A DNA stretch of 64,000 nt, from contig NW_027266274.1 of the NCBI RefSeq assembly GCF_022045235.1, positions 3,100,001-3,164,000 of the forward strand, in the 5' to 3' direction. The notes beneath the pieces were generated by a model. That model was not told where the DNA came from. It saw only the letters and a program-made list of their open reading frames with translations, and made no database searches. Both the position numbers and the translations under genes were made by a program. Source of the stretch: Haliotis cracherodii (lineage: Eukaryota). Shown here piece by piece: positions 5,925 to 60,900 of this stretch; within the stretch, counting starts at the first letter, position 1, and each line of letters starts with the position of its first letter.

Positions 5925-6690
5925 AGGCTCACCGGTGGTTGATATCATGGGCAATGATGTCCCTGGTCGGGTCTGAGCCAGGCACACCGATTGTTCATAT
6001 CATAGGCAATGATGACCCCAGTCAGGTCGGAGCCAGGCACACCGATTGTTCATATCATAGGCAATGATGACCCCAGTCAGGTCGGAGCCAGGCACACCGA
6101 TTGTTGATATCATAGGCAATGATGTCCCTAGTCGGGTCGGAGCCAGGCACACCGATTGTTGATATCATGGGCAACAATGTCCCCAGTCAGGTTGGAGCCA
6201 GGCAAACCGGTGGTTGATATCATCAGCAACAATTCCCGAGTCAGGTCAGAGCCAGGCACTCTGGTGGTTGATATCATGGGCAATGATGTCTCTAGTCGGG
6301 TCGGAACCAGGCACACCGGTGGTTGATATCATCAGCAACAATTCCCCAGTCTGGTCGGAGCCAGGCGCACCAGTGGTTGATATCATGGGTAATGATGTCT
6401 CTAGTCGGGTCGGAGCCAGGCACACCGGTGGTTGATATCATGAGCAATGATATCCCCAGTCAGGTCAGAGCCGGGCACACCGGTGATTGATATCATGGGC
6501 AATGATGCCCCCAGTCAGGTCAGAGCCAGACACACCGGTGGTTGATATCGTGGGCAATGATGCCCCTAGTCAGGTCGGAGCCAGGCACACCGGTGGTTGA
6601 TATCATGGGCAATGATGCCCCCAGTGATGTTCGAGCCAGGCACATCGGAGGTTGATATCATGGGAATTGATGCCCCCATGCAGGCACAAT
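5925..6690. repeat. ~59-60-bp diverged minisatellite, about 13 copies
   Basis: Unit like gagccaggcacaccggtggttgatatcatgggcaatgatgtccccagtcaggtcg. Confidence 0.9.
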
Positions 6691-24014: not shown

Positions 24015-24190
24015 NNNNNNNNNNNNNNNNNNNNNNNNNNNNNNNNNNNNNNNNNNNNNNNNNNNNNNNNNNNNNNNNNNNNNNNNNNNNNNNNNNNNNN
24101 NNNNNNNNNNNNNNNNNNNNNNNNNNNNNNNNNNNNNNNNNNNNNNNNNNNNNNNNNNNNNNNNNNNNNNNNNNNNNNNNNNNNNNNNNN
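24015..24190. other. Assembly gap (176 N) just upstream of NSFL1C
   Basis: Run of n bases. Confidence 0.99.
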
Positions 24191-28100: not shown

Positions 28101-29274
28101 TAAAACCACCACACTTGCATACATACACGAAAATTGGCCAAATTGGTGTCACATATACACTGACGGATCTTCAGACCCGATCTCCAACCACACAGGCTTC
28201 GGAGTCCATACCACACAACCAGTTATATCCACACAATCTTACCGACTCCCTAACAACCAATCTATATTCACGGCCGAACTTATGGGCATGGCCTCAGCCC
28301 TGCATAACCAACAATCTAAAAACAACAAAAAAATCCTAATTCTCACTGACTCCCTGAGTGGACTACAAGCCCTCCAAAACAAAAATACCAAAAAACGACC
28401 TAAATTAATAAACCAAATACTTAAAAGCTCCAACGACCTAACAAAAGCAGGCAAACAAATAACCTTCTTGTGGATCCCCGCCCACGTAGGAATTTACGGC
28501 AACGAAAGCGCCGATAAAGCAGCTAAATTATCTCTCAAAATACCAGAAATAAGCCTAAACCTACCCATCTCAAAATCAGAAATTAAAAGTGTAAACAAAC
28601 AAAAAATAACCAAAAAATGGCATAATCAATATCAAAACTCAAATAGCCAAATCAAAAAAGTGCTCAGAAAACCACTAGCCAAACCTAAAATCCTACACCC
28701 CTCTAAAAAAATTGACAGATTAATTACAAAACTCCAAACAGGACACACTAACCTAAATAACCACCTAAAACAACTTAAAAGACACACCACAGGCAACTGC
28801 CCCCACTGCAAACAACCCGAAACCACAGAACACGCACTCATTCACTGCTCCCACTATCAAACACACAGAACCACACTACAAACCACCCTCAATCTAAATA
28901 AGGTTCCTACTCTAGATGAAATACTAAACCCGCAAAATAAACTAGAAAACTTCAAGGCCCTAGGCGTATTCCTAATCAAAACAGACCTAATTAAGCGCAT
29001 CTAAAAATTAATTAATCTACCAATCCAAAATCCAATAAACATACAAACACCTACCTCAACCGGCTCCCTTAGTTCCCTCCTCCACCCACCTCGGCATTTA
29101 GTCCAAATTTCAAAATTTCAAAAAATCAATATAAGCAACCCCTAAAAGCCCCCTCTTGGGTTGCACACACCACTTTCACCCTTCTCGGAATACACTAAAT
29201 GGTCCGGCCAGGCCCGTGTGCGAAATACGCTGTAGTCGGAAAGCACACGTTAAATCTTCTATATCAGTCAGTCA
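25163..29274 (+). mobile_element. I-group (I/Nimb-like) LINE, 5'-truncated to ORF2: AP endonuclease, RT, RNase H, CCHC
   Basis: ORFs 25247-26260 (QWNANG, CIQET, GDFNAH, SDHFPI) and 26248-29004 (YRPISL, DFSKAFD, GTPQGS, FADD, YTDGS, WIPAHVGIYGNESAD, CPHC..ETTEH..IHC). (TCAG)n tail. 11-bp target-site duplication GTTTGGGTGTT at 25152-25162 and 29275-29285. Confidence 0.93.
25247..29004 (+). pseudogene. LINE ORF2 polyprotein with one frameshift at about 26172-26175
   Basis: Adding one A at ctaaacgc joins PWWNEEIELTRL to KRKSAFNRAKRDP...QNLVKTAK, giving a single ~1250-aa frame. Confidence 0.85.
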
Positions 29275-40397: not shown

Positions 40398-43300
40398 CTA
40401 TAAGTTGTACTTTGAGCGAGCGTATCTATCTTGTCCCTGGCAGTATTCATTGTAGATGAGCTTGAACAGGAACAGGTGGAAGATGATGATGAGGAAGGCA
40501 ATGGAAACCCAGAAGAGAGTGGGCAGTCCACCGAAGTGATGGCCGTGCCGATGTAAGGCAATCACATGGTGCTCGTGAGCAGGTGCTGAAACAGGGTTAG
40601 TTACAATGACACACACTTGATCAGATGTTCAAAAGAACTGGCATAAAAAACTAGCGAAAATGAATAGATTAATATGCATCCTGACATTGTTTGTTTATCT
40701 TAGAAAGTTAGCCTTTGGGGATATTTATGTGAATAAAAGTTTTTAAAAATATGATAATGTTCGGTTTCCACAAATTCATCAGATGAATTGAAACTGTCCC
40801 ATCCAGACTGACTGTGTGGGGCTGAGTGTTGTGGCTGTCCATGAGCCAAAGTACCAGAAGAACAACAGGCAACAGTCACAGCTTTACCTTCCTCTATGGC
40901 CTTGACATGTATAGCATGCTTCAGTTCCTCCACGTGAATCTTGTCCGCTGTGATGTACAGGATGGATGTCAACGGGTCGGTTAACTTCACAGGGAAGCGT
41001 TGCCACTCTTTGCTGTCAACATACAATCCATTAACATGGAAAACATGTAACAGTGTGATTTATACTCATCCAATTCGCACACTCACCCCAGTGACACCGG
41101 GGCATCCAGACAGTGTTATCAGGTCTATACTCACCCCAGTGGCACCGGGGCATCCAGACAGTGTTATCAGGTCTATACTCACCCCAGTGGCACCGGGGCA
41201 TCCAGACAGTGTTATCAGGTCTATACTCACCCCAGTGGCAACGGGGCATCCAGACACAGTGTTATCATGTATATACTCACCCCAGTGGCACCGGGGCATC
41301 CCGACATGTGTTATCAGGTATATACTCATCCCAGTGGCACCGGGGCATCCAGACACAGTGTTATCAGGTATATACTCACCCCAAGGGGCACCGGGGCATC
41401 CCGACATGTGTTATCAGGCATATACTCACCCCAGTGGCACCGGGGCATCCAGACACAGTGTTATCAGGTATATACTCACCCCAAGGGGCACCGGGGCATC
41501 CCGACATGTGTTATCAGGTATATACTCACCCCAGTGGCACCGGGGCATCCAGACACAGTGTTATCAGGTCTATAATCACCCCAGTGGCACCGGGGCATCC
41601 AGACACAGTGTTATCAGGTCTATACTCACCCCCGTGGCCTCGGGGCATCTAGAGATGTGTTATCAGGTCTATACTCACCCCAGTGGCACCGGGGCATCCA
41701 GACGTGTGTTATCAGGTATATACTCACCCCAGTGGCACCGGGGCATCTAGAGATGTGTTATCAGGTATATACTCACCCCAGTGGCACCGGGGCATCCAGA
41801 CACAGTGTTATCAGGTATATACTCACCCCAGTGGCACCGGGGCATCTAGAGATGTGTTATCAGGTATATACTCACCCCAGTGGCACCGGGGCATCCAGAC
41901 AACCAGCATCACAGGCATAGTAGGGCTTGTCATTCCTGTCCAGGGCCACATACAGGTTGGCCTTATTGTCCTCCCCAACGGTGACACTGATGTTGACATG
42001 GGTGTTGTTGCCGTAGTTGATGCGACGAAAGAAGAAATCTCTATGTAAATCTTTCGGGTGTATAGCCATCTCCAGATGAGAGTTGTGGAAACGAAGTGCT
42101 CCAAAGCTAAGCATCATGGCCTGGAGGACCCCTTCAGCTCCTGCCGAGAAAGCAGATCTCTTGTTCTGAGTAGCTTCATAATATTCCTCCATATACAGGT
42201 CATATATTAGCCACTCGTTACTTCCTCATATTCTTTGCTTAAGTGATTAAGTAAGGTTCTATGCTGCCGCAAGCAATGTTCCAGCAATATTACAACAAGG
42301 GACGAGAACAATGGGACTCATAGATTGTACCTGAGTGGGTATTCAAACCAAAGACTTCAGTGTGCCGAGTGAATACTTTTATCTCTAGGTTATCTAGGCC
42401 CATCTTGTCAGAAACAAACAACCGATTAAAAGTAACTTTCCCACATCTGCATTATTTTTTCACATGGCTACATAAGTAATGTTTAAACATAATCAATTGC
42501 AACAATGGTCAATTCAGGTATATTGTTGTATATTGAGTTGAAATTGCCACCTGACTGCACCATGACCGCACAACCCTGCTTTTCCAGGGTGATCATCCAC
42601 GTTGTCACCACACGCGCTATCTGGTCTTCATCTTCGACATCAATCCACAGTTTGTCTGCTTGCCTGCAACAACATCACTTGATATACACTTGTATACTTG
42701 ATGTACACATTAGGTCAACTTACACATACAGAAGGTCAACACCACATACACAGGAGGTCAACTTAATATACAGTCAAGTCTTGTTAATCCGACAATCGTC
42801 TTTATCCGACACAAATGATAGGAACCGATTAAATCAGTGCTATTTAGACCCCTTAATCTGACAGTCTCGCACTCTGACTCCGACACACTGATTCTGCAAC
42901 AGATTGCTGAAACCACTCATTAAAATGTGAAAATTAGTTGTATTTTTGCAATGTCATTAATCAAAGATGAATGAATGAACAACAAAACAATATGAATATT
43001 TCGTATTTAATGATCTTACTACAAGGTACACATGCTTCTTATCTATCGTGAAGATGTCGGATTTTCGATGGCAAACGTTGATACTACTAAATTTCGCTTA
43101 TCCAACATACATGTTAATCCGACATAATCATGTCGGATTAACGGAACTTGACTGTATACATGTGGTCAACTTAATATACACCAGGGTCAACTTAATATAC
43201 ACCAGGGTCAACTTAATATATACAGTGGGTCAACTTAATATACACCTGGGTCAACTTAATATACACCAGGGTCAACTTAATATATACAGTGGGTCAACTT

Positions 43301-46300
43301 AATATACACCAGGGTCAACTTAATATACACCAGGGTCAACTTAATATATACAGTGGGTCAACTTAATATACACCAGGGTCAACTTAATATACACCAGGGT
43401 CAACTTAATATATACAGTGGGTCAACTTAATATACACAGTGGGTCAACTTAATATACACAGTGGATCAACTTAATATAATACAAGAGTTGGCCAGAAGGT
43501 CAACTTCATGCACACAGAGGGTGAACTTAATCCACACAGGGGGTCAGCTTCAAATAAATAGGGTCAACTTGTGGCTGAAGCTGCCTTATACATGAAGTCT
43601 CAGTCATGTGTACAGTCTCAGTTGTGATAGAGGAGAGAGTCATGTACAACTTACAGTGTTGAGTGTTCTCCATAGCATCTATCGGGGTAGTATAGAACCT
43701 TCTGTATGTTGATGCGCTGGGCTTTAGTGGTAGACGGGTCGTGTAGAGGAGCAGGCACATTACTCAGGACAAAGTATATTGTAGAGTTAATCTTGTCGCC
43801 ATTCAGAGCCCCACCTGCCTTGGAGTAGCTGATGCCGAAACCACTCTGCCACAACTGATGACAAAAGCATGGAATTAACTGCATATTTGTTTGTAATAAT
43901 AATCTGTCTCCTGAAAAAATGAAAATATAATGCTTAATATTTTCTTGTGAAGTGTAAAAGAACAAGCGTATAGTCGACGAAGTCATCTATATCCCCCGCC
44001 ATTTTATTACGTTATGGTCCCAAACCAGGTAACTGACCCAACATTTCTCTTAGGCCATGTCAAAATAGCTGCAATGGAAATTCTAAAATAAACATTTATA
44101 AAACTCCTTAATATCACATGGCACCAGTTCAGTATGTCCCTAGTAGACGTGCAAAGTTTTGTAAGAAAGTATTTAACGAACACCACCCTTATAGAACCTA
44201 AGTCCAACTTGTTGCCATGGAAACGAAAAACATAAAAATTTATAAAATTCCTTAATAGCAAAAGGCACCAGTACAGCATGAGTCTGATAGACATGCAAAG
44301 TTTCTTAGAGAAATATTTGACGGTTTCTGAGTTATGCTCCGGAAATGATTTCGGGACGCACACACGCACGCATGCACGCACACACACACGCACGCACACA
44401 CGCACACATGGACAGAACCCATTTCTATATTCCCCGCCAACTTCGTTGGGGCGGGGGATAATTAGCAAGTTGGGTTTAATGCTGCATTGAACAGTATTTT
44501 CAATACTGTTACTCTCTGTGCCAGTGTAAGTGTGGTATCACAGGGTACTGAAGTACACTCTGTACCAGTGTAAGTATGGTATCATAAGGTACTGAAGTAC
44601 TCTCTGTACCAGTGTAAGTGTGGTATCATAAGGTACTGAAGTACTCTCTGTACCAGTGTAAGTGTGGTATCATAAGGTACTGAAGTACTCTCTGTACCAG
44701 TGTAAGTGTGGTATCATAAGCTACTGAAGTACTCTCTGTACCAGTGTAAGTGTGGTATCATAAGCTACTGAAGTACTCTCTGTACCAGTGTAAGTGTGGT
44801 ATCATAAGCTACTGAAGTACTCTCTGTACCAGTGTAAGTGTGGTATCATAAGCTACTGAAGTACTCTCTGTACCAGTGTAAGTGTGGTATCATAGGGTAC
44901 TGAAGTACTCTCTGTACCAGTGTAAGTGTGGTATCATAAGGTACTGAAGTACTCTCTGTACCAGTGTAAGTGTGGTATCATAAGGTACTGAAGTACTCTC
45001 TGTACCAGTGTAAGTGTGGTATCATAAGCTACTGAAGTACTCTCTGTACCAGTGTAAGTGTGGTATCATAGGGTACTGAAGTACTCTCTGTACCAGTGTA
45101 AGTGTGGTATCATAAGCTACTGAAGTACTCTCTGTACCAGTGTAAGTGTGGTATCATAAGCTACTGAAGTACTCTCTGTACCAGTGTAAGTGTGGTATCA
45201 TAAGCTACTGAAGTACTCTCTGTACCAGTGTGTTTTCAGCAACATCTGAGAGTAAGGTACGAGGGGTGGCTGAAGTTTTGAGCCTAAATAAGATGGACTG
45301 CATTGATGGAATTGGGTGCTGTACATTTGTCTACATAATCCCCACCGGGCTCCACACACTTCTATCAGTCATGCCGGAGTGGCTTCCTCCTCATGGTGAA
45401 AAAAGTTCTCCACAAGGGAAATAACTTCATCATCATTTGCATAATGCTTGCCAGACAGTTTTTCTTCAAACTTTGGAAGAGGTGGAAATCTGATGGTGTC
45501 AAATCTGGTGTATGCGGAGGTTGTTTAATGATTTCAAAACAAGTCGTATATTGAAGCCATGGCAACAACACACTTGGGCACAGGTGCATTGTTCTTGTGA
45601 AACAACACATCTTTAGCAAGTTTTCCACGATGTCTAAGATTGATATTCCCAAGCAGTTTGCTGAAGCAGATTAGAACTATAGTGGCCATTATTGGTCTGA
45701 CTTTTGGAGGGATAGTCAACCATTACGAGCCCTTGGAATCACAGAAAATCAAAACATCATCTTGCCAGCTGATGGCAGAAACTTTGCCTTATTCATCGGA
45801 GGAGATGTTACATCTTTCCACTGCTTTGACTGTTGTTCAGTCCAAGGCTGATTGTGGTGAACCCAAGACTCATCCATGGTGACACCTCGCTGAACACAAT
45901 CAGCTGGGTCTACTTCAAAATGACAAGGGATGATGGTCTTGTCTTGTTCATGTCTTGGACCATCGTCGGCACTCTCCCTTCTCCCATGCCCACCTCCTAA
46001 CAGTGGCAACGAAAGGAGCATCATCCCCTAAAGGTTGACACCATGTCTGCATGGTTAGCTGTTGTAATTAGCCCTTTCAGTTGGGAGATACTTGATTACA
46101 GCATAGTAGCCAAATTTGTCTGCATATAATGTGGGAGGATATAGTCATCATCTGATCAGTCTGTCTGTCTGTCTGTTCGTATTTTGTTTCCGGAACATAA
46201 CATGAAAACTGTGAAAAAAAAATCATCCAAACTTGGTCCATGTATTAACCAGGGCCTGAAGTGGTGTCTTTTGCGATTTTCATCTTTTGTTAACTCTTGT

Positions 46301-49300
46301 TCATCAAGAGAGAATACCTTGTCACTTTGATATCTGTTGTGTATTTGGTTCTAACTACTTTACTGAACACATGCAAGCAGTTACGGGTGTACCATACATG
46401 GTAGTGAGGCTCAGAATGTTTCTGCCATCCTTTGTATGTAGACAGTAAGGTAGGTGTACTCACGGATGCCCACACTCTGGTGTGCTCCTGAAGCAAATGC
46501 TTCCCATCAATATTTAATGCTTTTTCCATATCCTGAAACAAATACATGCATGTTTACACCAACATGAAGAAACCAGAAGCTTATAAGGTTTCTAAATTGT
46601 GTTTTAAGATATTTCCTACATTAATCTGGATAATCTATCTGTAGGTTGTAGCGACAAGTGACTTGACTTCAAACATGTCATAGATCTGTCACATCCTCTA
46701 TAGACTTAAGATATCATTGTTTGAAAAAAACATAAGTAGTCCCATTCACTGTGCTCCTAAGTACATGGTTAATTTAGACTTACTATCTTGACTTGGGAGA
46801 GGAGGTCAGGGACTAAATGTGGCACCTCATGCTTGTCTGCAGGCTTGGTGTAATGTACCACAGTCAGGATGTGATACAGCTTTGTTCTGGAACAGAGTAA
46901 CAAGTAACACTTGAAATGCTATCAGTCAAAATACATGTACTAATATATCAGTGTCTGGCTGCACTGTCCATCAACCAGTGACTGAGTACCTGTCTAGCTG
47001 CACTGTTTATCTACCAGTGACTGAGTACCTGTCAGGCTGCACTGTTTATCTACCAGTGACTGAGTACCTGTCCATCTACCAGTGACTGAGTACCTGTCAG
47101 GCTGCACTGTCCATCTACCAGTGACTGAGTACCTGTCTGGCTGCACTGTCCATCTACCAGTGACTGAGTACCTGTCTATCTACCAGTGACTGAGTACCTG
47201 TCCATCTACCAGTGACTGAGTACCTGTCCATCTACCAGTGACTGAGTACCTGTCAGGCTGCACTGTCCATCTACCAGTGACTGAGTACCTGTCTGGCTGC
47301 ACTGTCCATCTACCAGTGACTGAGTACCTGTCCATCTACCAGTGACTGAGTACCTGTCCATCTACCAGTGACTGAGTACCTGTCTGGCTGCACTGTCCAT
47401 CTACCAGTGACTGAGTACCTGTCTATCTACCAGTGACTGAGTACCTGTCCATCTACCAGTGACTGAGTACCTGTCCATCTACCAGTGACTGAGTACCTGT
47501 CTATCTACCAGTGACTGAGTACCTGTCCATCTACCAGTGACTGAGTACCTGTCCATCTACTAGTGACTGAGTACCTGTCCATCTACCAGTGACTGAGTAC
47601 CTGTCTGGCTGCACTGTCCATCTACCAGTGACTGAGTACCTGTCCATCTACCAGTGACTGAGTACCTGTCCATCTACCAGTGACTGAGTACCTGTCCATC
47701 TACCAGTGACTGAGTACCTGTCCATCTACCAGTGACTGAGTACCTGTCCATCTACCAGTGACTGAGTAGCTGTCCATCTACCAGTGACTGAGTACCTGTC
47801 CATCTACCAGTGACTGAGTACCTGTCCATCTACCAGTGACTGAGTACCTGTCTGGCTGCACTGTCCATCTACCAGTGACTGAGTACCTGTCTATCTACCA
47901 GTGACTGAGTACCTGTCCATCTACCAGTGACTGAGTACCTGTCCATCTACCAGTGACTGAGTACCTGTCCATCTACCAGTGACTGAGTACCTGTCCATCT
48001 ACCAGTGACTGAGTACCTGTCTGGCTGCACTGTGACCGTGCTGGAGTCCAGGTAGACCATGCCTATAGCGGCTGCCACTACTGATGTGGATTCAGGGATC
48101 TGCACAATGCCAGTTGTCACTTTGTATGAGACATTTTCACCTGTAGATGTCTTGCTCCTGCAGAACAGAAAGTAACTCAATTCCATCTTAAGACACTTCT
48201 CACAAAGATATTACAAAATTACTTAAGAAATATTGCCAGGACATTACCATGTTCATTTAAAATTGTTATACGTTGTTAAATATTTAGGAGAGAGGGCTGC
48301 ATGATCCCAATGGAACATTCTGGAAACTGTAAAGAATCTTGTGAAGGTAAAAAGTATCCATGTAAAGCATGAAGATTTCATTAAAATTAATATATTTGTA
48401 CGTGTCAGGAAAATTATATAGAACCCAGCAGTGGTTTACAAAGTCAGCTTACAGAAATTGCTGTGTCTTGGAGTCCGTCCATCCCGAGGGCCCAATCTGA
48501 TCCAGCTCAACAGTAACGGCAGATTGCTTAAATGAAATGTTGGCATACAATAAACAGATTCAGTTAACTTGTAACTTTGTTTGGTTGCTGTTTTACACCT
48601 CTCTCAAAAATATTCCAGTGATATAATGGCAGCCTGTAAATAATCCAGTCTGGACCAGACAATGCAAGTTGCAAGCAGCAGTCGCTGGCTGAAAGTGTGT
48701 TTGCAAAGTGTGACATCAGGACAATAACTTATGAAAACCCAAAACATCCAGTGAGCATATGTCCATGTGGTTTTCTCCCTAAGTTTCCAACACTACCTTC
48801 TTCCTCACTTCTATCCTCCAAAGTAATTTTTGGTTGGGCATAATCTGATTAATGGGGTATTTTGTAATTTTCTTTGATACGATTTATCTACGATAACCAT
48901 GAGAAAAAATATGCCTTCTAACCATGCTAATAGTTGGAGAATAAACCTGTTTTGGTACCCGATTGAAATAATTAACTGCTAGATCTCTCAAACATTTCAT
49001 CAAATAAATTAATTGCTGGTCACTTAAAGGAGACGATTTTCTTGGCCTTTCACCTCTCAGTCATTTTTCCAATAATTCGCACTGCCAAAAACATTTGGAA
49101 GGTTTTTGAATAGTTCTAGGGTTTACACCGGTTAAGTATGAAACCTTCTGATCGGGGATCATAAAACTTCTCTGGTCAGCATGGGCAGAAGTCAATTTGT
49201 TGGGCTCAGGAGGCCTGATAACAAAATATTCTGAGGGACACAACTCAGACTAGCCGGGGTCTAGACAAACAACATACACATATAATTTGTTCACATAATT

Positions 49301-52300
49301 CATAAATCAATTTGAGTACATCTACCCGGCACGAGACAGGTAAACACAAGCACTTGCCACAAAACTCTTATTACATCATGCGACATACTTTTTGGCCAGC
49401 GACTGTATCCCAGATTCCCTATTGTATTTGGAACATATTTTCAGCACATTGTGAGTAGGGCCACTTGATACTTACAGTTGGGTTCTGTATACGGATGTCC
49501 TGCACAAGGACAGATGGATGTGATCGATGAGCGTATAGTTTGGAGCCAATGCTGACACAGTTCCAACCCTGTTGGAAACAGAAACATGATCAGTCATATG
49601 TGGCACCCTTGCTTTACATGATCAGTCACTGGTGGCACCCCTGTGTTACATGATCAGTCACTGGTGGCACCCCTGTGTTACATGATCAGTCACTTGTAGC
49701 ACCCCTGCTATACATGATCAGACACTTGTAGCACCCCTGCTATAAATGATCAGACACTTGTAGCACCCCTGCTATACATGATCAGACACTTGTAGCACCC
49801 TTGCTTTACATGATCAGTCACTGGTGCCACCCCTGTGTTACATGATCAGTCACTGGTGGCACCCCTGTGTTACATGATCAGTCACTTGTAGCACCCCTGC
49901 TATACATGATCAGACACTTGTAGCACCCCTGCTATACATGATCAGACACTTGTAGCACCCCTGCTATACATGATCAGACACTTGTAGCACCCTTGCTTTA
50001 CATGATCAGTCACTTGTAGCACCCCTGCTATACATGATCAGACACTTGTAGCACCCCTGCTATACATGATCAGACACTTGTAGCACCCCTGCTATACATG
50101 ATCAGACACTTGTAGCACCCCTGTGTTACATGATCAGTCACTTGTAACACCCCTGTGTTACATGATCAGTCACTTGTAGCACCCCTGTGTTACATGATCA
50201 GTCACTTGTAGCACCCCTGCTATACATGATCAGACACTTGTAGCACCCCTGTGTTACATGATCAGTCACTGGTAGCACCCCTGCTATACATGATCAGTCA
50301 CTTGTAGCACCCCTGCTTTACATGATCAGTCACTGGTAGCACCCCTGTGTTACATGATCAGTCACTTGTAGCACCCCTGCTTTACATGATCAGTCACTTG
50401 TAGCACCCCTGCTATACATGATCAGTCACTTGTAGCACCCCTGCTTTACATGATCAGTCACTTGTAGCACCCCTGCTATACATGATCAGACACTTGTAGC
50501 ACCCCTGTGTTACATGATTAGTCACTTGTAGCACCCCTGCTTTACATGATCAGTCACTTGTAGCACCCCTGCTATACATGATCAGACACTTGTAGCACCC
50601 CTGTGTTACATGATCAGTCACTTGTAGCACCCCTGCTTTACATGATCAGTCACTTGTAGCACCCCTGCTATACATGATCAGACACTTGTAGCACCCCTGT
50701 GTTACATGATCAGTCACTTGTAGCACCCCTGTGTTACATGATCAGTCACTTGTAGCACCCCTGCTTTACATGATCAGTCACTTGTAGCATCCCCGTTTTA
50801 CATGATCAGTCACTTGTAGCACCCCTGCTTTACATGATCAGTCACTTGTAGTACCCCTGTGTTACATGATCAGTCACTTGTAGCACCCTTGCTTTACATG
50901 ATCAGTCACTTGTAGCACCCCTGTGTTACATGATCAGTCACAAGTGGCTGCCTTAGCTTTTAATAGACAGGTTAACATGGAGTAACCTTACATCCCCGCC
51001 TAAAGTTTCTTGTACAACTGATTTAAAATAAAGTGAAGTGTTTTCAGCTTCCTGACAGATGGACCTTTGTCAGATGTTAGATAGTGTGTACTCTCTCACC
51101 CTCTTCACTGTCTGCATCCGGAAGGCCACCCCTGCCTTCATATCCACAGCGAATGCCTCTGTAACAGAGTGTTATATGTTCTTGTGACATACCACTAATA
51201 ACATTTCCATTGGAATTTAATCTTTGCATTGGATGTGATGGATATGATGAGGAGGATGATGATGGTAGTGGCTACATTATACATGTTCATGTCATCATGG
51301 AGATATCTCTACAACAGGGGGAATCAATACAAGTTACATAACTCACCTCTCGATGGTTCTCCATCAACCTGAGTTTGAACAACTGGGTAGAACTTGACCG
51401 GCAGAGACAGAGCTCTGTTCAAACGGATAAAGAGTCCATTCTGTGAGTCAAATGCTGCCGCTACCTTACCATTGCCTGTTTTGAAGAAAGTACTGAAAAA
51501 TTACTGTCCATCTGACATCAACCAGTATTTGACTTCACTGCGTTGTTAAACTAAAATATTGGTAGAAATTGTGAATGTATGACATAACTTTCTGTGGCAA
51601 GAGAGATGACATAAATGTTGCTGATTCTCAGTTAGGTGGCCTAGCTTTGATTGCTGTCAGTGACACATAATATACAGTAGAATGCCTCTACCAGGAACTT
51701 GAAGGGACAAACCCTCCAGGTTGAAGATATCAAGTGATTCGAGATACAGATACAAAACATGTTACCAATATTCATTTTAATTCTTTCTTTTCACTGCACA
51801 CTACGATGACTGAGCACCAATTTACATGTTACATGATACCATACATTTATTTAAAACTGGAACAAATTCACTGACACCTGATGAAGCATGTCTACATAAC
51901 ATGACATAGTTGGCAACGTCACTACAGATGTTACAAATAACAATGTCGTAGCAGCGTTCCTTCACTCAGTTTACCTAATCCATGTCTTCTCTTAGAATCT
52001 GCCCTTTAGTTAAACCCACACACCACAATTACTAACTGTGAAAACACTGTGGTAACATCTCACAAGACAAGACGATGTTGTGATCCTTGTTAAAACTGAT
52101 CATTACAGTTGAACCACAGTTTACCAAATCATCAAAGACAAATGTTTAGGAAGAATTAATTTTTCATGTGCTTTCAGTAATTGTTGTTGTATACAATGTA
52201 TCAAAGTACAAAAGTAACCATGATAACTGGCAACCACAATAACCTAATGCTGACCACAACATTTGACAGGCATTTCCACCATGAAAGGACAGTGGGAAGA

Positions 52301-55300
52301 ATCCACCACTGTCAACTGCCTTCTTACCAACATAGATGGGATACGCCGTCTCCCCCGGCAGCAGGGGCCTGTGGTTAATCACTACATCCAAGGACTCAGA
52401 GGACTTGAAAAAGGATTTGTGGATTTTCTCTTCTAAACAGTCCTCCAGAGCTGAAACCAAGAGAAGTGTGGTGAAGGAGATCCCAAGATGGTTTATCCCC
52501 AATATTGATCCTAGGTGGGGTGAGGTGGAACAGTGTTGGTACGTACCTAGCTGTATCTTGGGAGGGCTGGGGTGAGGTGGAAGAGTGTTGGTACGTACCT
52601 AGCTGTATCTTGGGAGGGGTGAGGTGGAAGAGTGTTGGTACGTACCTAGCTGTATCTTGGGAGGGGTGAGGTGGAAGAGTGTTGGTACATACCTAGATAG
52701 ATATTGAGTGGGGTAAAATGGAAGAGTGTTGGTACGTACCTAGCTGTATCTTGGGTGGGGTGAGATGGAAGAGTGTTAGTACGTACCTAGCTGTATCTTG
52801 GGTGGGGTGAGATGGAAGAGTGTTAGTACGTACCTAGCTGTATCTTGGGTGGGGTGAGGTGGAAGAGTGTTGGTACATACCTAGCTGTATCTTGGGTGGG
52901 GTGAGATGGAAGAGTGTTGGTACATACCTAGCTGTATCTTGGGTGGGGTGAGATGGAAGAGTGTTGGTACATACCTAGCTGTATCTTGGGTGGGGTGAGA
53001 TGGAAGAGTGTTGGTACGTACCTAGTTGTATCTTGGGTGGGGTGAGATGGAAGAGTGTTGGTACATACCTAGCTGTATCTTGGGAGGGGTGAGGTGGAAG
53101 AGTGTTAGTACGTACCTAGCTGTATCTTGGGAGGGGTGAGAAGTAGAAGAGTGTTAGTACGTACCTAGATGGATCTTGGGTGAGGTTGAGTAGAAGAGTG
53201 TTGGTACGTTCCTAGATGGATCTTGGGTGAGGTTGAGTAGAAGAGTGTTGGTATGTACCTAGATGGATCTTGGGTGGGATTGAGTAGAAGAGTGTTGGTA
53301 CGTTCCTAGATGGATCTTGGGTGAGGTTGAGTAGAAGAGTGTTGGTACGTACCTAGATGGATCTTGGGTGGGGTTGAGTAAAAGAGTGTTGGTATGTACC
53401 TAGATGGATCTTGGGTGAGGTTGAGTAGAAGAGTGTTGGTATGTACCTAGATGGATCTTGGGTGGGGTTGAGTAGAAGAGTGTTGGTACGTTCCTAGATG
53501 GATCTTGGGTGGGGTTAAGTAGAAGAGTGTTGGTACGTACCTAGATGGATCTTGGGTGGGGTTAAGTAGAAGAGTGTTGGTACGTACCTAGATGGATCTT
53601 GGGTGAAGTTAAGTTGAAGAGTGTTGGTACCAGATAGTAGACTAGCAGCAATAACACCAGAACAAGTAGGATTATCTTCCGAGATCTGCAGTGAGAAAAC
53701 AATCACTATATGTTGTTTATTCATTTAAGTAATTTTAAAACTACAGTTATTCTGCTTTACCATCTGGATGAAGATAACTCATTCTGAAAGTTAAATCTAA
53801 ATGATTAGCTTTTTCCTGGTAGAATATCACTTTTAAAAAACTGTAATCCTTGTGGATATTACCTTCATAACCCAATATTTGCATTATTTGTTTTGTTTAA
53901 CTGTAAACCTTTTAATGCTCTTAATGCTGTATGTTCCATGTTAGGTCGATGTTTTAAATGTCTAGTTGTATTTGTTTAATCCCCTTTTTATATGTATTAT
54001 GTTTGGGATAAATACAGCTGTATAACACATTGTGTAACACCGAAGTGTGCGCTTATGTACTGCGGGAACAAGTTTCACTAACAGTAACAAATATTGAAAA
54101 CTCCCAACATCCCTGGGCTTTTTCAATGACAATGCATGTAGAGATGATAGATCACTGAGAGGAGCTTATGCACACTCGATGACCCCAGCAACTCTGCAGC
54201 TAGGCTGACATCACATGGCTGGTGGCTCTTGCAACAAATTTCACAAATCACATCATAGGGCATTGTGACATGATTGTAAACCTTGTGGCGCAGGGCCCCA
54301 TTCCACATGGTGAACGTAGTGCAATGGCAGCCATAAGTCTATGTTAAAGTATGGGAGTCATGATAAAGTTAGTGCTATGAATACATAAAAATAAAATTAG
54401 ATATAAATAAATTATCCCAAATATAACATTTGTTACATAAAGTTAGTGCTACGATAGCTTTGTGGAACGGACCACTGAATTCTAAAGGTTGGCCATTGTA
54501 TGATATTAAATTAGCAAGTATCATCTTTTGACGTGTCTGAAGTATTATTCTGTTAAACTCAATTGGAGTACACTGTGAATTGAGTAGATGTCTGCATATT
54601 CAAACACGACAGTGAAATAATTTAATTTTTTATAAAAGGCAAGTAATCAGTATAATAGTAAACCTGCTCCTGTGTAACACCAATTTCATGAAACATTTGA
54701 ATAGTTCTGGTATCCATGGTATCTGACTTGCTTTCACTCGCCAGATACTAGAACTATCCATTCGTTTCCTAAAATTGGTATTACACAGGAGCTGGTTTAG
54801 TATTCTATATATCTTTATCGTATCTTAATTGTACTACCATTGCCACAAACAAAATATCAGTATTACCTTTAGTCAGTTACCAAATATTGCATAGCTTTAC
54901 ACGTATCTCTCAGGTCTGTTTATGTCTCAATATCATGTAAGTATACTCTCACGCAGGGTTGTACCCATGCTTATGAAACTGGCGGTCCAGAGGGATCCAA
55001 ATATTCAGATGAGTATTTCAAGGGTCCTGTGAGTGTCAAGCCATATTGCACAGTGACATGTCCAACGTCTTATACATGACATCAGTAATAAACCTTCCAA
55101 TAACCTTTATGTTTGTTAAGAGACTGGATGTTTCTATTCTTGCCTGGGGTGACTCATTGCATTTCAAATCTTATTTTCTTTCCTTATGACAAAAGACTTA
55201 AAACACACAACTTAGTGACATTATCATCAAACACCTGTGTGTGTACTTCCCTCTTTCAAGTTTCATTGTAGGTACCATGTGATCCTGTGCAGACAATATT

Positions 55301-58300
55301 CAATTAACTTCTGGTACTTATCCAATAGTAAACATTGGTTGTTCCTCAAGACATAGTAGGTGGGGTAGGGGGGTATTTGGTGGGATAAGGGTGTATGGTG
55401 GGGTAGGGGGGTATTTGGTGGGATAAGGGTGTATGGTGGGGTAGGGGGGTATTTGGTGGGATAAGGGTGTATGGAGGGATAGGGGGGGTATGGTGGGATA
55501 GGGGGGTATGGTGGGATAGGGGTGTATGGTGGGGTAGGGGGGTATTTGGTGGGATAGGGGTGTATGGTGGGGTAGGGGGGTATTTGGTGGGATAAGGGTG
55601 TATGGTGGGATGGGGGGTGTATGGTGGGATAGGGGTGTATGGTGGGGTAGGGGGGTATTTGGTGGGATAGGGGTGTATGGTGGGGTAGGGGGGTATTTGG
55701 TGGGATAAGGGTGTATGGTGGGATAGGGGGGTGTATTGTGGGATAGGGGTGTCTGGTGGGGTAGGGGGGTATTTGGTGGGATAAGGGTGTATGGTGGGGT
55801 AGGGGGGTATTTGGTGGGATAAGGGTGTATGGTGGGATAGGGGGGTTTATGGTGGGATAGGGGTGTATGGTGGGGTAGGGGGATATTTGGTGGGATAGGG
55901 GTGTATGGTGGGGTAGGGGGGTATTTGGTGGGATAGGGGTATATGGTGGGGTAGGGGGGTATTTGGTTGGATAGGGGTGTATGGTGGGCTAGGGGGGTGT
56001 ATGGTGGGATAGGGGTGTATGGTGGGGTAGGGGGTGTATGGTGGGGTAGGGGGGTGTATGGTGGGATAGGGGTGTATGGTGGGGTAGGGGGGTGTATGGT
56101 GGGGTAGGGGGGTGTATGGTGGGGTAGGGGGGTATTTGGTGGGATAAGGGTGTATGGTGGGATGGGGGGTGTATGGTGGGATAGGGGTGTATGGTGGGGT
56201 AGGGGGGTATTTGGTGGGATAGGGGTGTATGGTGGGGTAGGGGGGTATTTGGTGGGATAAGGGTGTATGGTGGGATAGGGGGGTGTATGGTGGGATAGGG
56301 GTGTCTGGTGGGGTAGGGGGGTATTTGGTGGGATAAGGGTGTATGGTGGGGTAGGGGGGTATTTGGTGGGATAAGGGTGTATGGTGGGATAGGGGGGTTT
56401 ATGGTGGGATAGGGGTGTATGGTGGGGTAGGGGGGTATTTGGTGGGATAGGGGTGTATGGTGGGGTAGGGGGGTATTTGGTGGGATAGGGGTATATGGTG
56501 GGGTAGGGGGGTATTTGGTGGGATAGGGGTGTATGGTGGGCTAGGGGGGTGTATGGTGGGATAGGGGTGTATGGTGGGGTAGGGGGTGTATGGTGGGGTA
56601 GGGGGGTGTATGATGGGAAAGGGGTGTATGGTGGGGTAGGGGGGTGTATGGTGGGGTAGGGGGGTGTATGGTGGGGTAGGGGGGTGTATGGTGGGGTAGG
56701 GGGTGTATGGTGGGGTAAGGGGTATTTGATGGGATAGGGGTGTATGGTGGGGTAGGGGGTGTATGGTGGGGTAGGGGGTGTATGGTGGGGTAGGGGGGTG
56801 TATGGTGGGATAGGGGTGTATGGTGGGTAGGGGGGTGTATGGTGGGGTAAGGGTGTATGGTGGGGTAGGGGGTGTATGGTGGGGTAGGGGGTCTGTATTG
56901 TGGGGTAGGGGGGTATTTGGTGGGATAGGGGGGTGTATGGTGGGGTTAGGGTGTATGGTGGGGTAGGGGGGTATTTGGTGGGATAGGGGTGTATGGTGGG
57001 GTAGGGGGGTGTATGGTGGGGTAGGGGAGTGTATGGTGGGGTAGGGGGGTGTATGGTGGGGTAGGGGGGTATTTGGTGGGATAGGGGTGTATGGTGGGGT
57101 AGGGGGGTGTATGGTGGGGTAGGGGAGTGTATGGTGGGGTAGGGGGGTGTATGGTGGGGTAGGGGAGTGTATGGTGGGGTAGGGGAGTGTATGGTGGGGT
57201 AGGGGGGTATTTGGTGGGATAGGGGTGTATGGTGGGGTAGGGGGGTGTATGGTGGGGTAAGGGTGTATGATGAGAGAGGAGCTCACCCAGACCCAAAGAA
57301 AGCTGAAGACATAAAGTCAATCAAGACACCACAGACCCCAAAAGAATTACAAGAATTCCTTGGCATAGTAAATTACATGGGACCATTTGTACCAAAATTG
57401 TCACAACACACCGCTTCACTTCGTGACTTAATCAAATAACAAAGACTTTGAGAGAATCAAATCTCTCATATGCGAAGAAGGCACACTGAGCAACTTTGAT
57501 CCAAGCATCCTTACGGGGACTTGGAGCAGCATTAACACAAGACGGAAAACCAATAGCAATCACATCAAAGTGTCTGACTGACACTGAACAACGGCATGCC
57601 AACATTGAAAGGGAATTATTGGCAGTTGTATTTGGCTGCGAAAGATTACATACATATGTGTATGGAAACCATTTATTATAGAGACAGAAAACAAACCCTT
57701 AGAAAAGATCAAGCTGAAGAACTTGACTGCAGCCCAACCAATATTACAGAGAATGCTTCTACGTCTCCAAAACTATGATGTCAAAATCAGATACAGACCA
57801 GGAAAAGAAATGACCCTGGCTGATGGGCTATCAAGACTACCAAACAATAAGAATACAAGAGAAATTCACTTGGACGTCAAGGTTAGCCCAGTACAGTTTT
57901 CATCAGACAAGCTAACAACGCTAAAGTCATGCACAAGTCAAGACCAAACGCTCAGCGAACTATGTGACATGATTGTTGAAGGATGGCCTAGCACATTCAA
58001 AGAAATACCAGGACCAATCCGCCCGTACTGGTGTTACAGAGATGAATTATCAGTTGAAGATGGCCTCATCCTTAAAGGAGAGAGAGTCATAATTCCCCAA
58101 GACATGCAACATGAAGTACTACAGAAAATACATGCAGGTCACCAAGGTGCAACCAAGTGCAAGTTGAGAGCCAGATCATGTGTATTCTGGGATGGAATAA
58201 ACAAAGATATTGAACAAGCTGTAAAATCATGCCTTACATGCCAAAGCCATCAAGACTCACAAGCTAAAGAAACCCTGATGCCTCATGAGATCCCAACAAG

Positions 58301-60149
58301 ACCATGGCAGACAGTAGGTACAGACCTATTTCATCATGATAACAACAAGTTTCTTACCGTCGCAGACTACTACTCAAAGTGTCAGGTCATAAGAAAGTTA
58401 CCAAAGCCCTGCACAAGTATTCAGGGGTCAGGGGTCATCGAGTGTGCAGAAGCTCCTCCCAGTGAGCTATCATCTCTACACGTAATGTCATTGAATACGC
58501 CCTGTGGTGTTGAGAGTTTTGTTTACTAATTATAGACTGCGGCGGCGCATTTTAGAGCAAGCGCTAGTTTATGAAAGCACTTTAATTTTTAAAATATTTT
58601 TTATTTCGTTTTTCTCGTAATTCAAGTGGCTAAAATGGTTATAAATGGGAACTAATAAAAATATATTATTTTTTCCTTAGCCCTTGGATCCCCTTTAGGA
58701 TAAATCACCCCTTTACGATCATTAGGGTTAGGTACCCGTTTAGTGGCTATTAGATTACCCGAAGTATATCCTTAGCCCTTGAATCCCCTTTATGATCATT
58801 AGGGTTAGCAGTGGTTAGGTACTCGTTTAGTGGCTATTATAGATTATATAACGGCTCCTAATATTCTTCACACAAAAACGTCGAGTAAAAAGGATGAAAT
58901 GGTTTTGTGTCGAATATTTTGGCAACTGGAAACTGTCCTGGAACATTCACACAAGCCACTTTCACCGGCTACATATTTTCAGTACTGATTCAAAAGCAAA
59001 CTCACCGTTGCGTCGTCACTAGCCATGCTTTTCCTTTCTTGTTCCTTACTGTTATCCACATCATCCTTACAGTGTTCCCTACCACACTTTTCTGTCACAA
59101 AAATCACTCGACGAATTATTAAATATCATATCATTCATGCGTACTCGCGAGTTCGACGTCTGACGTCTGAGGCCTGGAGACGTTTTCAGTTCGCTGCATA
59201 TCGGCTCATTCCTCTCCACTCGGTATCTTGTACATTACGGAATGGGACGAGTGTACCAAATGGCATCGGGATCATTCGTACATGTCTGTAGACTAAAGTC
59301 ACGAGATACCATGCCTACCCGTAACCTTCGTAAGTGTCCGTCACCTATTCGACCCTTTTCGTTCAGTTCCGTAACGTCATAGGCATGACTAGGTAAATTT
59401 GCACCAAGTTTAACAGTGTGGACGTAGCTCAGTCGGTTAGCTGTCGGGCTAACGATCCGAAGGTTGCGAGTTCGCGTCCGACGGATTCTCACTAAAACTG
59501 GTTGCTTGTCTTGAGACATGTGACCTACGGCAGAGATCATTCTCACGAGAAGTTGTGGTACTGTATTCTAAAGGTGCTCCCATTTGGCAAACAAATGCTA
59601 ATTATTGTTGATAGCGCACATGGTCCAATGGTAAAGTGTTGGTTACTTAGAGTAACTCATTATCTTAGCTTCAGCCAAGCTGGCAACCCAAGCTCGATTC
59701 TCTAAGCTTTGTTAAACATGTTAAATGAAATCCGAAAAAAAGTGTGGCAGGTAAAGTGCGGGATTTCTCATTTTTAGCCACAGCGAAACCTTATGATTTT
59801 GAGTGCACATATTGGGTCCTAAACTAAAAGTGATTTAACTCCGCATCTAAAGAAAATGACTTAGGGCTGGATCTGTTCCTGTTAACCTCAATACATTACA
59901 GCAACGAAGCAGTGTAACGTTTTCTGCAATTACCATTTATGAAAGACGGGTGCATTGCAAATGGGCGAAGAAGCAAATATCACCTGACAATGACAACAGG
60001 CATCACTATCCACGTTGCAACTTCGACACAACTTGCAACTCCGTCCACTACGACAACAATTCTTGTCGGTGTCGCCTGTTGACAGCTGCTTACCTGCTCA
60101 AGGAGGATAGAGCATTCAGTGAACTCTGGATCCTGTTTTGCAGCCACAT
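40398..60149 (-). CDS. KIAA2013: KIAA2013 homolog (DUF2152 membrane protein), 15 exons, 611 aa
   Basis: Exons (minus): 60149-60094, 53685-53588, 52450-52328, 51475-51347, 51158-51100, 49568-49476, 48526-48453, 48157-48017, 46886-46784, 46532-46464, 43854-43655, 42663-42551, 42140-41876, 41012-40888, 40585-40398. All introns GT-AG, phases consistent, 1836 nt. Motifs matching KIAA2013 as I recall it: [88 protein letters not shown]. Confidence 0.93.
41081..41900 (-). repeat. ~48-50-bp array of duplicated exon-13 end plus GTGAGT donor, about 16 copies
   Basis: Minus-strand unit ...tctggatgccccggtgccactggg|gtgagtatatacctgataacactgtg; the first 24 nt are the coding end of exon 13 (LDAPVPLG). Confidence 0.93.
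42715..43480. repeat. 21/25-bp minisatellite interrupted by a MITE
   Basis: Units gggtcaacttaatatacacca and gggtcaacttaatatatacagt occur on both sides of the MITE. Confidence 0.85.
42771..43154. mobile_element. Tc1/mariner-pogo-type MITE, copy 2
   Basis: TA|CAGTCAAGTCTTGTTAATCCGAC...GTCGGATTAACGGAACTTGACTG|TA; homologous to 16258-16723. Confidence 0.85.
43961..44461 (+). mobile_element. HINE/Pearl-like (non-autonomous Helentron-type) element
   Basis: AACAAG start, subterminal inverted pair atcccccgcc / ggcgggggat, two core-like repeats, an (ACGC/ACAC)n microsatellite, and a 3' hairpin ccccgccaacttcgttggggcgggg. A related inverted fragment lies at about 46130-46290. Confidence 0.65.
44511..45230. 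repeat. 44-bp minisatellite, about 16 copies
   Basis: Unit tactctctgtaccagtgtaagtgtggtatcataaggtactgaag. Confidence 0.95.
45258..46120 (-). mobile_element. Decayed mariner transposon
   Basis: TACGAGGG TIR-like end at 45258. Minus-strand fragments [25 protein letters not shown] and [20 protein letters not shown] (like YSPDLAPSDFHLF). Confidence 0.8.
46955..48033 (-). repeat. Mixed 26/39-bp array of duplicated exon-8 end plus donor, about 35 donor copies
   Basis: Minus-strand units gtactcagtcactggtagatggacag (26) and gtactcagtcactggtagatggacagtgcagccagacag (39); acagtgcagccagacag is the coding end of exon 8. Confidence 0.93.
49585..50940. repeat. 32-bp minisatellite filling KIAA2013 intron 5, about 42 copies
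   Basis: Unit catgatcagtcacttgtagcacccctgctata (variants gtgtta, gcttta); ends about 15 nt from the exon-6 acceptor. Confidence 0.95.
52510..53630 (-). repeat. ~47-bp array of duplicated exon-2 end plus GTACGT donor, about 24 copies
   Basis: Minus-strand unit gtacgtaccaacactcttctacttaaccccacccaagatccatctag versus exon-2 end gtaccaacactcttcaacttaacttcacccaagatccatctag. Confidence 0.93.
54651..54809. mobile_element. Fold-back (palindromic) MITE-like element
   Basis: ~65-bp inverted arms: taaacctgctcctgtgtaacaccaattt...atagttctggtatc and gatactagaactat...aaattggtattacacaggagctggtttag. Confidence 0.7.
55355..57268. repeat. G-rich ~20-bp minisatellite in KIAA2013 intron 1
   Basis: Units gtgtatggtggggtaggggg and gtatttggtgggatagggg; source of the Pro-rich minus-strand ORFs. 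Confidence 0.95.
57262..58420 (+). mobile_element. Ty3/Gypsy pol remnant (RT end, RNase H, integrase start)
   Basis: HPDPKK...[10 protein letters not shown]; [12 protein letters not shown]...[23 protein letters not shown]; [27 protein letters not shown]; H-x5-K-C...C-x2-C zinc finger; [11 protein letters not shown]...ADYYSK. Stops and frameshifts; no LTR seen. Confidence 0.88.
58675..59465 (-). mobile_element. Interspersed repeat, copy 2 (KIAA2013 intron 1), inverted relative to 22252-22975
   Basis: Its reverse complement aligns along its length with 22252-22975. Confidence 0.8.
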
Positions 60150-60900
60150 TTGCCGTATTGATATGGATACAGGGAATCTACGAGAAAATATTCTATTTAA
60201 CACAGCTGATCCATTCCTCATAGTCAACACCCTGAGTGACACACCGCCATATTTTCATACCGCAGTTAATAATGTTTTGACACATTCGACGCTATAAATA
60301 TTCCAGATATGACCTGTTTATGATATATTTTACTCAAAATGTGACAGTGATGGTACTTTTAATTATCAGCGGAGCGATATGGATTATATTAATATGTTTC
60401 ACCAATCGCCAAACTATAAATATTCTTTTCGAAGTTCACATCCGGTTAGAATGTTTTGGTTGGAGATGAACAGAACGTACACCATAAGCTTGTGATTGAT
60501 ACTATGCACATCGATTAGCCGATTATTAAGGTGTGTTTTTGTAATTTAGAAAAAATAAGCATTTTATCCTAACTCCATTATCGATGACGACATGACATAA
60601 GAATATATGTCAGAATATATAGCTTGGTATCGTCGCCCCAGATCTGCTTGTACCGGTAACAAATGCAGCTTGGTTGTGGCTGTGTCACTGTCAGTGTGTA
60701 GCATAAGCTTGATCGGCAAGAGAAGAACACCGGGGGTAGCTGCCTGTAATCTCGGTAATTCACTCACATTTCACGCATGTTGATTGCCAGCAGGTCAACC
60801 AAAGGTCAATATCTACTAGCCTACGGACTAGTAGTGGCCAAAGTAAAACATCAACAATGATCAATCAGTGGTGAATTTAGAGTGCTACTGCTGGTTTGTT
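60150..60900. promoter_or_regulatory. Probable bidirectional promoter region for KIAA2013 (-) and BBS2 (+)
   Basis: Head-to-head genes. YY1-like aaaatATGGCGG on the minus strand at about 60255-60244. The BBS2 ATG exon is preceded by an acceptor, implying an upstream non-coding exon. Confidence 0.45.

Follow-up and report, generated by a model that had tools for sequence, protein, structure and literature searches.

The KIAA2013 gene and its donor-spanning repeats

The stretch of Haliotis cracherodii DNA analyzed here (assembly GCF_022045235.1, contig NW_027266274.1, positions 3,100,001 to 3,164,000 of the forward strand) is 64,000 nucleotides (nt) long and is hereafter called the window, to which all positions refer unless another contig or locus is named. 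It carries on its minus strand a homologue of KIAA2013, in which three introns are filled for the most part by tandem copies of the end of the preceding exon together with the adjoining 5′ splice site, or donor. The minus-strand open frames between 40.4 and 53.7 kb match DUF2152 (Pfam PF10222), with the PF10222 matches located in exons 11 to 14. Exon 13 scores 90.4 bits (cut-off 29.4) over profile positions 405 to 499, exon 14 continues the profile at positions 504 to 541, and exons 11 and 14 likewise exceed the gathering score. Protein searches, started with exon 13 and continued with one full-length match, led to named molluscan KIAA2013 homologues.

The KIAA2013 protein comparisons were made exon by exon against the reference protein (tblastn), with the exons taken separately. 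The Haliotis RefSeq homologues are ~99% identical to the window gene, and the H. rufescens protein is nearly 100% identical exon-wise. All five residues that distinguish H. cracherodii isoform X1 from H. rufescens are present in the window gene. A lancelet source, which the wealth of minisatellites and the GC content had initially suggested, was dismissed on account of these Haliotis matches. An earlier annotation of this DNA (the original prediction) had assigned the repeat-filled introns the numbers 2, 8, and 13, and the 15-exon model agrees with this numbering. The parts of the gene that are central to the analysis are as follows.

40401–60221, minus strand: KIAA2013 homologue (DUF2152), 15 coding exons, from Pfam PF10222 and exon-wise tblastn
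60093–60221, minus strand: exon 1
53588–53689, minus strand: exon 2, encoding a signal-anchor/transmembrane segment; the intron 2 unit derives from its last 43 nt (spliced contigs, sequence)
52451–53587, minus strand: intron 2, 1137 nt, with 22 intronic copies of a 47-nt unit (contig joint, Tandem Repeats Finder (TRF), unit table)
48017–48156, minus strand: exon 8, whose last 17 nt recur in the intron 8 array (contig pieces)
46887–48016, minus strand: intron 8, 1130 nt, with interleaved 26- and 39-nt units (TRF, sequence)
41876–42159, minus strand: exon 13 (5′ end approximate), whose last ~26 nt recur in the intron 13 array (Pfam, tblastn)
41013–41875, minus strand: intron 13, 863 nt, with 48- to 50-nt units (TRF, sequence, RefSeq protein junction)
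40401–40586, minus strand: exon 15

A second H. cracherodii isoform, X2 (599 amino acids), has an alternative 5′ end in place of exon 1 and is unrelated to the arrays.

When read on the minus strand, each of the three arrays begins within a coding exon. TRF places them at 52514–53630 (47 nt × 23.6), 46952–48021 (26/39 nt, about 35 copies), and 41081–41901 (50 nt × 16.7). Exon 2 ends with GTACCAACACTCTTCAACTTAACTTCACCCAAGATCCATCTAG/GTAC, wherein the slash marks the exon–intron border, and in the 47-nt unit the last 43 nt of the exon are followed by GTAC. Exon 8 ends with ACAGTGCAGCCAGACAG/GTACTC, and the 39-nt unit of this array joins 22 intron nt to the last 17 exon nt, with the 26-nt unit being a shortened form that retains ACAG/GTACTC. 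Exon 13 ends with TGTCTGGATGCCCCGGTGCCACTGGG/GTGAGTAT, and its 48- to 50-nt unit includes ~26 coding nt and 24 intron nt (GTGAGTATATACCTGATAACAC). The intron borders used in this description were fixed by a contig joint for intron 2, by a contig end for intron 8, and by sequence and protein alignment for intron 13. Short microhomologies are evident at the unit borders of intron 2 (GTAC) and intron 8 (ACAG).

To count donors, a 9-mer was accepted as a donor copy if it was identical to the authentic donor 9-mer at no fewer than seven of the nine positions. By this definition introns 2, 8, and 13 hold 20, 35, and 16 donor copies, the authentic one included, among which 12, 35, and 15 are identical 9-mers. 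The donors are of the types TAG/GTAYRT (intron 2), CAG/GTACTC (intron 8), and GGG/GTGAGT (intron 13). The last donor copies are found at positions 52546, 46989, and 41086, which places them 96, 103, and 74 nt before the respective acceptors, and the arrays make up 91.6%, 90.9%, and 91.4% of the three introns. Thus, the architecture described in the original prediction, in which an array of exon end plus GT donor starts inside the exon in each of these introns, is confirmed by TRF and by the unit tables. Its figures of about 90% intron fill and of 96, 103, and 74 nt remaining before the acceptor are reproduced, the distances to the base.

The observed arrays are not a chance resemblance. Intron 2 copies retain 34 to 40 of the 43 exon positions, two frame-shifted units aside, and intron 13 copies mostly retain 24 to 26 of 28 positions. 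Within intron 2, the nine exon-proximal units retain 37 to 40 of the 43 positions and the thirteen distal units mostly 34 to 36, and this split indicates two amplification phases or block homogenization. Three of the 23 intron 2 units lack the GT (GAACGT), and beyond its last donor this intron retains part of one more unit in degenerate form. In intron 13, an in-frame TGA occurs immediately past exon 13.

Donor choice and origin of the arrays

To examine donor use, we compared read contigs with the window over positions 47900 to 53750, a region that encompasses introns 2 to 7 and the exon 8 donor. The contigs came from three runs, representing organisms A, B, and C, and from one DNA run. The three runs, which hold the exon share only, were presumed to be RNA, and the removal of introns from their contigs supports this assignment. 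In spliced contigs of 1630, 2382, and 1290 nt (organisms A, B, and C, respectively), all introns in the compared stretch are removed, with CT..AC borders on the plus strand. Intron 2 is skipped as a single 1137-nt piece in all three organisms, and the joint (53588/52450) corresponds to the first donor. Similarly, the exon 8 piece ends in all three organisms at position 48017, the base before the first GTACTC, and the contigs run on for hundreds of bases. Joints from later donors were absent among the contigs of the three organisms, although contigs drop rare forms.

Protein sequences are consistent with the same choice. RefSeq proteins from four species (H. cracherodii, H. rufescens, H. rubra, and H. 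asinina) are continuous over the junctions PKIH(L or Q)/(A or V)LEDC, R/TKLYH, and PVPLG/KEWQ. A check of the reading frame after every later donor revealed that any of those in introns 2 and 13 would lead to a stop codon and that those in intron 8 would lead to a frameshift or a stop, as would readthrough into the respective intron, such that the first donor alone keeps the frame. The first donor of each array is therefore the donor used, as indicated for introns 2 and 8 by contigs and proteins and for intron 13 by annotated proteins. These results favor one of the two splicing alternatives given in the original prediction, in which the spliceosome picks the first donor rather than removing units stepwise, and uphold its proposal that use of the extra donors would mostly cause frameshifts or stops.

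One further observation concerns the end of exon 8. The KIAA2013 isoforms X1 and X2 of H. rubra, both of 635 amino acids, differ solely at residues 280 and 281 (AE versus PD). These residues correspond to the last codons of exon 8, the same exon end that is repeated in the intron 8 array of the window. The difference may arise from alternative use of duplicated exon-end copies.

A search of the whole 1.18-Gb genome with a 201-nt probe from each array returned matches at its own locus only, with the sole exception that the 26-nt array of intron 8 is 70 to 73% like another array on contig C6. Since the units are found nowhere else in the genome, the arrays arose locally, and the presence of the gene's own coding sequence within the units excludes a transposon or a dispersed satellite. 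The original prediction had likewise viewed the arrays as tandem duplications of the exon–intron junction, which the unit structure and the confinement of the units to this locus bear out. Moreover, the three units are mutually unrelated, and three independent events, as had been suggested, are therefore required.

We reasoned that a duplication straddling a donor places the new copies between the authentic donor and the old intron, and thus the remainder beyond the last donor copy should represent the ancestral intron. From this duplication logic it follows that the ancestral introns would have been 74 to 103 nt long, with that of intron 2 possibly shorter given its degenerate partial unit. 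If these remainders are ancestral, the introns have expanded roughly tenfold, in agreement with the earlier proposal that minimal introns were enlarged to about this extent.

The DNA run of organism B provides an independent view of the age of the arrays. Organism B is ~4% diverged from the window in unique intron sequence, and in its DNA run the units of the intron 2, 5, and 8 arrays occur well above single-copy depth. These repeat units are therefore present in multiple copies in a sibling species as well, from which we conclude that the arrays genuinely exist and predate the divergence of the two, or are at least common to both.

Minisatellites elsewhere in the window and genome

The donor-spanning arrays reside in a region rich in tandem repeats. 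TRF identifies 19 merged arrays that together amount to 16.0 kb, or 25% of the 64-kb window, which has a GC content of ~41%. Four further introns of KIAA2013 contain arrays, and all four are internal to their introns.

55359–57269, minus strand: intron 1 array, 20/38 nt, internal (TRF)
49584–50941, minus strand: intron 5 array, 32 nt × 42 (TRF; contig joint 49567/51099)
44510–45231, minus strand: intron 10 array, 44 nt × 16, internal (TRF)
43155–43483, minus strand: intron 11 array, 21/64 nt, internal (TRF)

The intron 5 array starts ~160 nt past the donor, stops 15 nt short of the acceptor AG, and is not donor-derived. It was considered as an acceptor-side analogue of the donor-spanning arrays and was rejected, since it ends before the AG. 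Each of its units carries ACTGATC, a motif resembling the branch-site consensus CTRAY. Because the array ends 15 nt before the AG, the working branch point of intron 5 probably lies in the last unit, in which case ~42 copies of it would be present.

Other features were noted along the gene. The 1.9-kb array of intron 1 is built of GGTGGGGTAGGGGGGTAT-type units that are strongly G-rich on the plus strand (GC skew up to 0.69) and C-rich in the transcript, and its non-template strand could form G-quadruplexes. Inspection by eye identified a gypsy-type reverse transcriptase/RNase H fragment inside intron 1 (57203–58526, plus strand) and, in intron 10, part of a mariner-like transposase (45368–45670, minus strand). 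In intron 6, positions 48610 to 48665 include a core of ~35 to 50 nt whose depth is 20,000 to 280,000 in each of the four runs and whose ends are both loose. The core represents part of a dispersed element of very high copy number, which is abundant also in the presumed-RNA runs.

Outside KIAA2013, a p47/NSFL1C-like gene was called by eye at about 11813–20034 (minus strand) from motifs such as ASFYEDG and an SEP-like segment. Three large arrays are located in its introns, and each of them stays 67 nt or more away from both splice sites.

12192–13849, minus strand: intronic minisatellite of the p47-like gene, internal
14718–15770, minus strand: intronic minisatellite of the p47-like gene, internal
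17268–19009, minus strand: intronic minisatellite of the p47-like gene, internal

An exon context was sought for the arrays at 2202–2877 and 5924–6678, and none was found. The window also includes a LINE-like (long interspersed nuclear element) open reading frame of 944 amino acids, recognized by eye at 25208–29001 on the plus strand, and 176 consecutive N, representing a gap or masked sequence, at 24015–24190.

To sample the genome beyond the window, we selected loci containing Pkinase and Myosin_head exons through Pfam searches and subjected the 60 loci to TRF, a set made up largely of intronless kinases and of the paralogues of a single myosin cluster. Near the myosin exons, one of about five arrays is donor-spanning, as detailed below. 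Two local features of contig C12 were also recorded. At C12:28404865-28416566, six copies of an intronless protein-kinase gene follow one another in tandem at intervals of ~1.6 kb, some of the spacers holding 55-nt arrays, and at C12:64.59-64.96 Mb there are at least 15 myosin-head paralogues, almost without minisatellites.

Distant orthologues of KIAA2013 were found on 52 metagenome contigs, with 60 to 81% identity in exon 13. The position of intron 13 is conserved among them, its length ranges from 175 to 1685 nt, and tandem repeats make up 0.3% of these loci. None of the 52 carries a donor-spanning array in intron 13, but these orthologues are too distant to inform on the ancestral state in Haliotis. 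One of them, on a marine metagenome contig (L105:861-1164), has a 43-nt × 7 array inside intron 13 that begins ~60 nt past the donor, clear of the boundary. The comparison with these orthologues underlines the unusual repeat load of the abalone locus.

Probable neutral passengers and the alternatives

We consider it probable that the three arrays are locally born minisatellites that span the exon–intron boundary and are carried as neutral passengers while the first donor is used. According to this reading, a 39- to 50-nt segment running from the exon end through the 5′ splice site would have been tandemly duplicated in each of three short introns (about 74–103 nt), and slippage or unequal exchange could then have amplified the segment to 16 to 35 copies. 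All extra copies would lie downstream of the authentic donor and would thus be intronic for as long as the first donor is used. With the first donor in use and the copies downstream, mRNA and protein would be unchanged and the arrays tolerated, presumably persisting under near-neutrality where minisatellites account for 25% of the region. The copies do not differ in sequence, so sequence is not what decides between donors. Position is most likely its basis, in that the first donor adjoins the real exon and might be selected in a 5′-to-3′, first-come-first-served manner comparable with that seen in experiments on human F7.

Indeed, the nearest precedents are human minisatellites whose first monomer lies across an exon–intron boundary, as known for F7, IFI6 (6-16), CBS, LMNB2, and PDGF (PMC1557585, Borensztajn et al. 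2006). Intervening sequence (IVS) 7 of F7 contains a 37-bp unit repeated 5 to 9 times, of which the first donor only is in use; intron 2 of IFI6/6-16 has 25 pseudo-sites, with the first three sites in use; and IVS13 of CBS has 15 to 20 repeats (PMC1557585). For LMNB2 (100 bp × 10–15) and PDGF intron 4 (81 bp × 16–18), the authentic site is the only one in use (PMC1557585). Mutagenesis of F7 revealed that the pseudo-sites are functional yet lose to the most upstream site, a choice of the 5′-to-3′ scanning type (PMC1557585). The abalone arrays resemble these cases in that the first unit comprises an exon end and 5′ splice site followed by many identical pseudo-donors, in the use of the most upstream site (exclusive in F7, LMNB2, and PDGF), and in the range of unit sizes and copy numbers. 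They differ from F7 in that the units include 17 to 43 exon nt rather than 4 nt, and from the human cases in general in the presence of three arrays in one gene, in the occupation of ~91% of formerly minimal introns, and in the mollusc host.

A second precedent is provided by the “mirages” of amphioxus, which two reports (PMC3087553, PMC3902484) describe as tandem repeats across exon–intron boundaries in Adh3, globins, troponin C, PGBD5, and other loci. There, mirages are said to leave splicing undisturbed and are proposed as a route to new introns, and somatic instability is shown for the Adh3 mirage. Both systems involve locus-specific repeats that duplicate splice sites in a minisatellite-rich genome while normal splicing is kept, and we count as a further likeness that mirages recur in many unrelated genes of one genome. 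However, mirages occur at both 5′ and 3′ boundaries whereas the abalone arrays are seen on the donor side only, and mirage copy numbers are mostly lower (3 to 6 in the globins) and belong to a cephalochordate rather than a gastropod.

The arrays also bear on Rogers' model, wherein a tandem duplication that covers an AGGT proto-splice site gives rise to an intron (Hellsten et al. 2011, PMC3265369). In both instances a tandem duplication with AG/GT creates extra usable splice signals, but the model yields a new intron inside an exon, whereas in abalone an intron that was already present becomes longer and neither a further intron nor a further exon is produced. Overall, the abalone arrays consist of head-to-tail units within the size range of boundary-spanning minisatellites (about 10–160 nt), have a first unit that spans the boundary, leave splicing undisturbed, and are of local origin. 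The original prediction knew of no earlier description of such a pattern, a claim that the human and amphioxus examples contradict. Our literature search on donor-spanning arrays in abalone or other molluscs found none; the nearest case is an ordinary intronic minisatellite, a polymorphic 27-bp repeat in a TSSK1-like gene of H. discus hannai (PMC6905558). This is apparently the first mollusc record of boundary-spanning minisatellites.

Several observations weigh against a history of neutral passengers with exclusive use of the first donor. Contigs cannot reveal rare isoforms, so a low level of later-donor use is possible, and for intron 13 the use of the first donor is supported by the RefSeq protein junction PVPLG/KEWQ only. 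The remaining observations concern the positions of arrays. KIAA2013 and the p47-like gene together contain three donor-spanning, zero acceptor-spanning, and seven internal arrays (the latter in introns 1, 5, 10, and 11 of KIAA2013 and in the p47-like gene). If a unit-length seed is placed uniformly over all intron-overlapping positions, 0.56 donor-spanning arrays are expected in the two genes versus the three seen (P(≥3) = 0.015; P = 0.003 for KIAA2013 alone). The proximal edges of the 12 arrays for which the donor is known include four in the 50 nt before the donor and none in the first 50 nt after it, with two more at 50 to 100 nt and four at 150 to 200 nt, a pattern that is suggestive but weak as a sign of junction bias. 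In addition, an independent donor-spanning array was found at an exon that had been selected through Pfam.

L048:1707-2273, contig C12 about 62.024 Mb: donor-spanning array, 79 nt × 7, starting 18 nt inside a myosin-head exon (Pfam positions 377–458)

The unit of this array is formed by the last ~18 exon nt (GAGTGCAACTTCCCCCAG) plus GTCAGTAG and the following bases.

These positional findings jointly leave room for a real junction bias, in which duplications would start preferentially at exon–intron boundaries, through transcription- or splicing-coupled breaks or through microhomology in the splice consensus, and produce a genome-wide excess of such arrays. The microhomologies at the unit borders of introns 2 and 8 would fit such a process. 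However, the window was flagged for this very pattern, and tests made within it are therefore inflated. When each array is conditioned on its host intron (the geometric null), the chance of overlapping a donor in the short ancestral introns is 0.27 to 0.40 per array, and the excess vanishes because overlap is then likely to begin with (1.55 expected versus three seen, P(≥3) = 0.18). The complete lack of acceptor-spanning arrays has a probability of 0.16 under the same null and is a further point against the neutral reading. The proposal in the original prediction of junction-biased duplication, or of selection for it, is thus unsupported by these counts, which fall within the geometric null. 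Furthermore, the three arrays of the p47-like gene and four others of KIAA2013 are internal, the unbiased sample near myosin exons is tiny, and the process lacks a known mechanism. Donor-spanning arrays are likely to be recurrent in the abalone genome, and a junction-specific duplication process is possible, but as the explanation for the KIAA2013 arrays we judge it to be rather unlikely.

Stepwise removal of the arrays would also be compatible with an unaltered mRNA. Under this scheme the exon joins a unit end, the donor is regenerated, and the cycle continues without leaving a trace in the product. Recursive splice sites are AG/GT ratchet points of long introns in Drosophila and vertebrates. 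The unit borders CTAG/GTACGT of intron 2 and ACAG/GTACTC of intron 8 have the same AG/GT form and would regenerate a donor, and the intron 2 units are pyrimidine-rich, some with TACTAAC. Yet the spacing in abalone is far shorter than that of known ratchet points, and units of 26 to 47 nt, if removed one at a time, leave too little room for a branch point and tract at their usual distances. The motif is absent from intron 13, whose borders are GGG/GT, and AG/GT in the other two introns follows simply from an exon that ends in AG. Intermediates were not seen in the contigs, which could not have shown any. We regard recursive removal as improbable.

A selected device, whereby decoy donors route transcripts to nonsense-mediated decay and array length tunes KIAA2013 output, had been raised in the original prediction and is considerably harder to reconcile with the data. 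In its favor, every later donor in introns 2 and 13 would bring in a stop, as would the majority of those in intron 8, and identical 9-mers have been kept in 12 of 20, 35 of 35, and 15 of 16 copies. However, recent amplification and homogenization would by themselves produce identical copies, and the loss of GT from three of 23 intron 2 units suggests that the donors are not being conserved. The spliced contigs of the three organisms contain the first-donor product alone, the same genome holds many arrays without splice signals, and the human pseudo-sites are silent or nearly so (PMC1557585). A regulatory role of this kind is therefore very doubtful.

Lastly, long minisatellites are hard to assemble and the copy numbers given here come from the assembly alone, but an assembly error, or a dispersed repeat or transposon abutting the exons, is scarcely credible given that the units hold the gene's own coding sequence and are confined to this locus, that a separate DNA run, from another organism, contains them at multi-copy depth, and that the 1137-nt length of intron 2 equals the stretch skipped by the spliced contigs.

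The interpretation offered in the original prediction is therefore partly supported, and we favor locally born, neutrally carried minisatellites as the explanation for the three arrays. For practical purposes, gene predictors and variant callers applied to abalone should expect decoy donors and introns that vary roughly tenfold in length. A broader and more speculative proposition, to which we attach little confidence, is that abalone genomes contain a genome-wide class of donor-anchored minisatellites generated by junction-favoring duplication and convergent with amphioxus mirages. Such natural arrays would hold as many as 35 identical 5′ splice sites, and within them the choice of the first site would override the short-intron pairing to be expected in an invertebrate. 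A genome-wide excess at donors, if true, would point to a junction-targeted duplication mechanism, one that likewise awaits explanation in amphioxus.

The occurrence of boundary-spanning minisatellites extends beyond lancelets and a handful of human genes to a mollusc, in which a single gene can contain several. The KIAA2013 introns constitute a natural experiment on 5′ splice-site choice, in which 16 to 35 sequence-identical donors are available and the first is used in three related organisms, even though use of the last donor would restore a compact intron of 74 to 103 nt.

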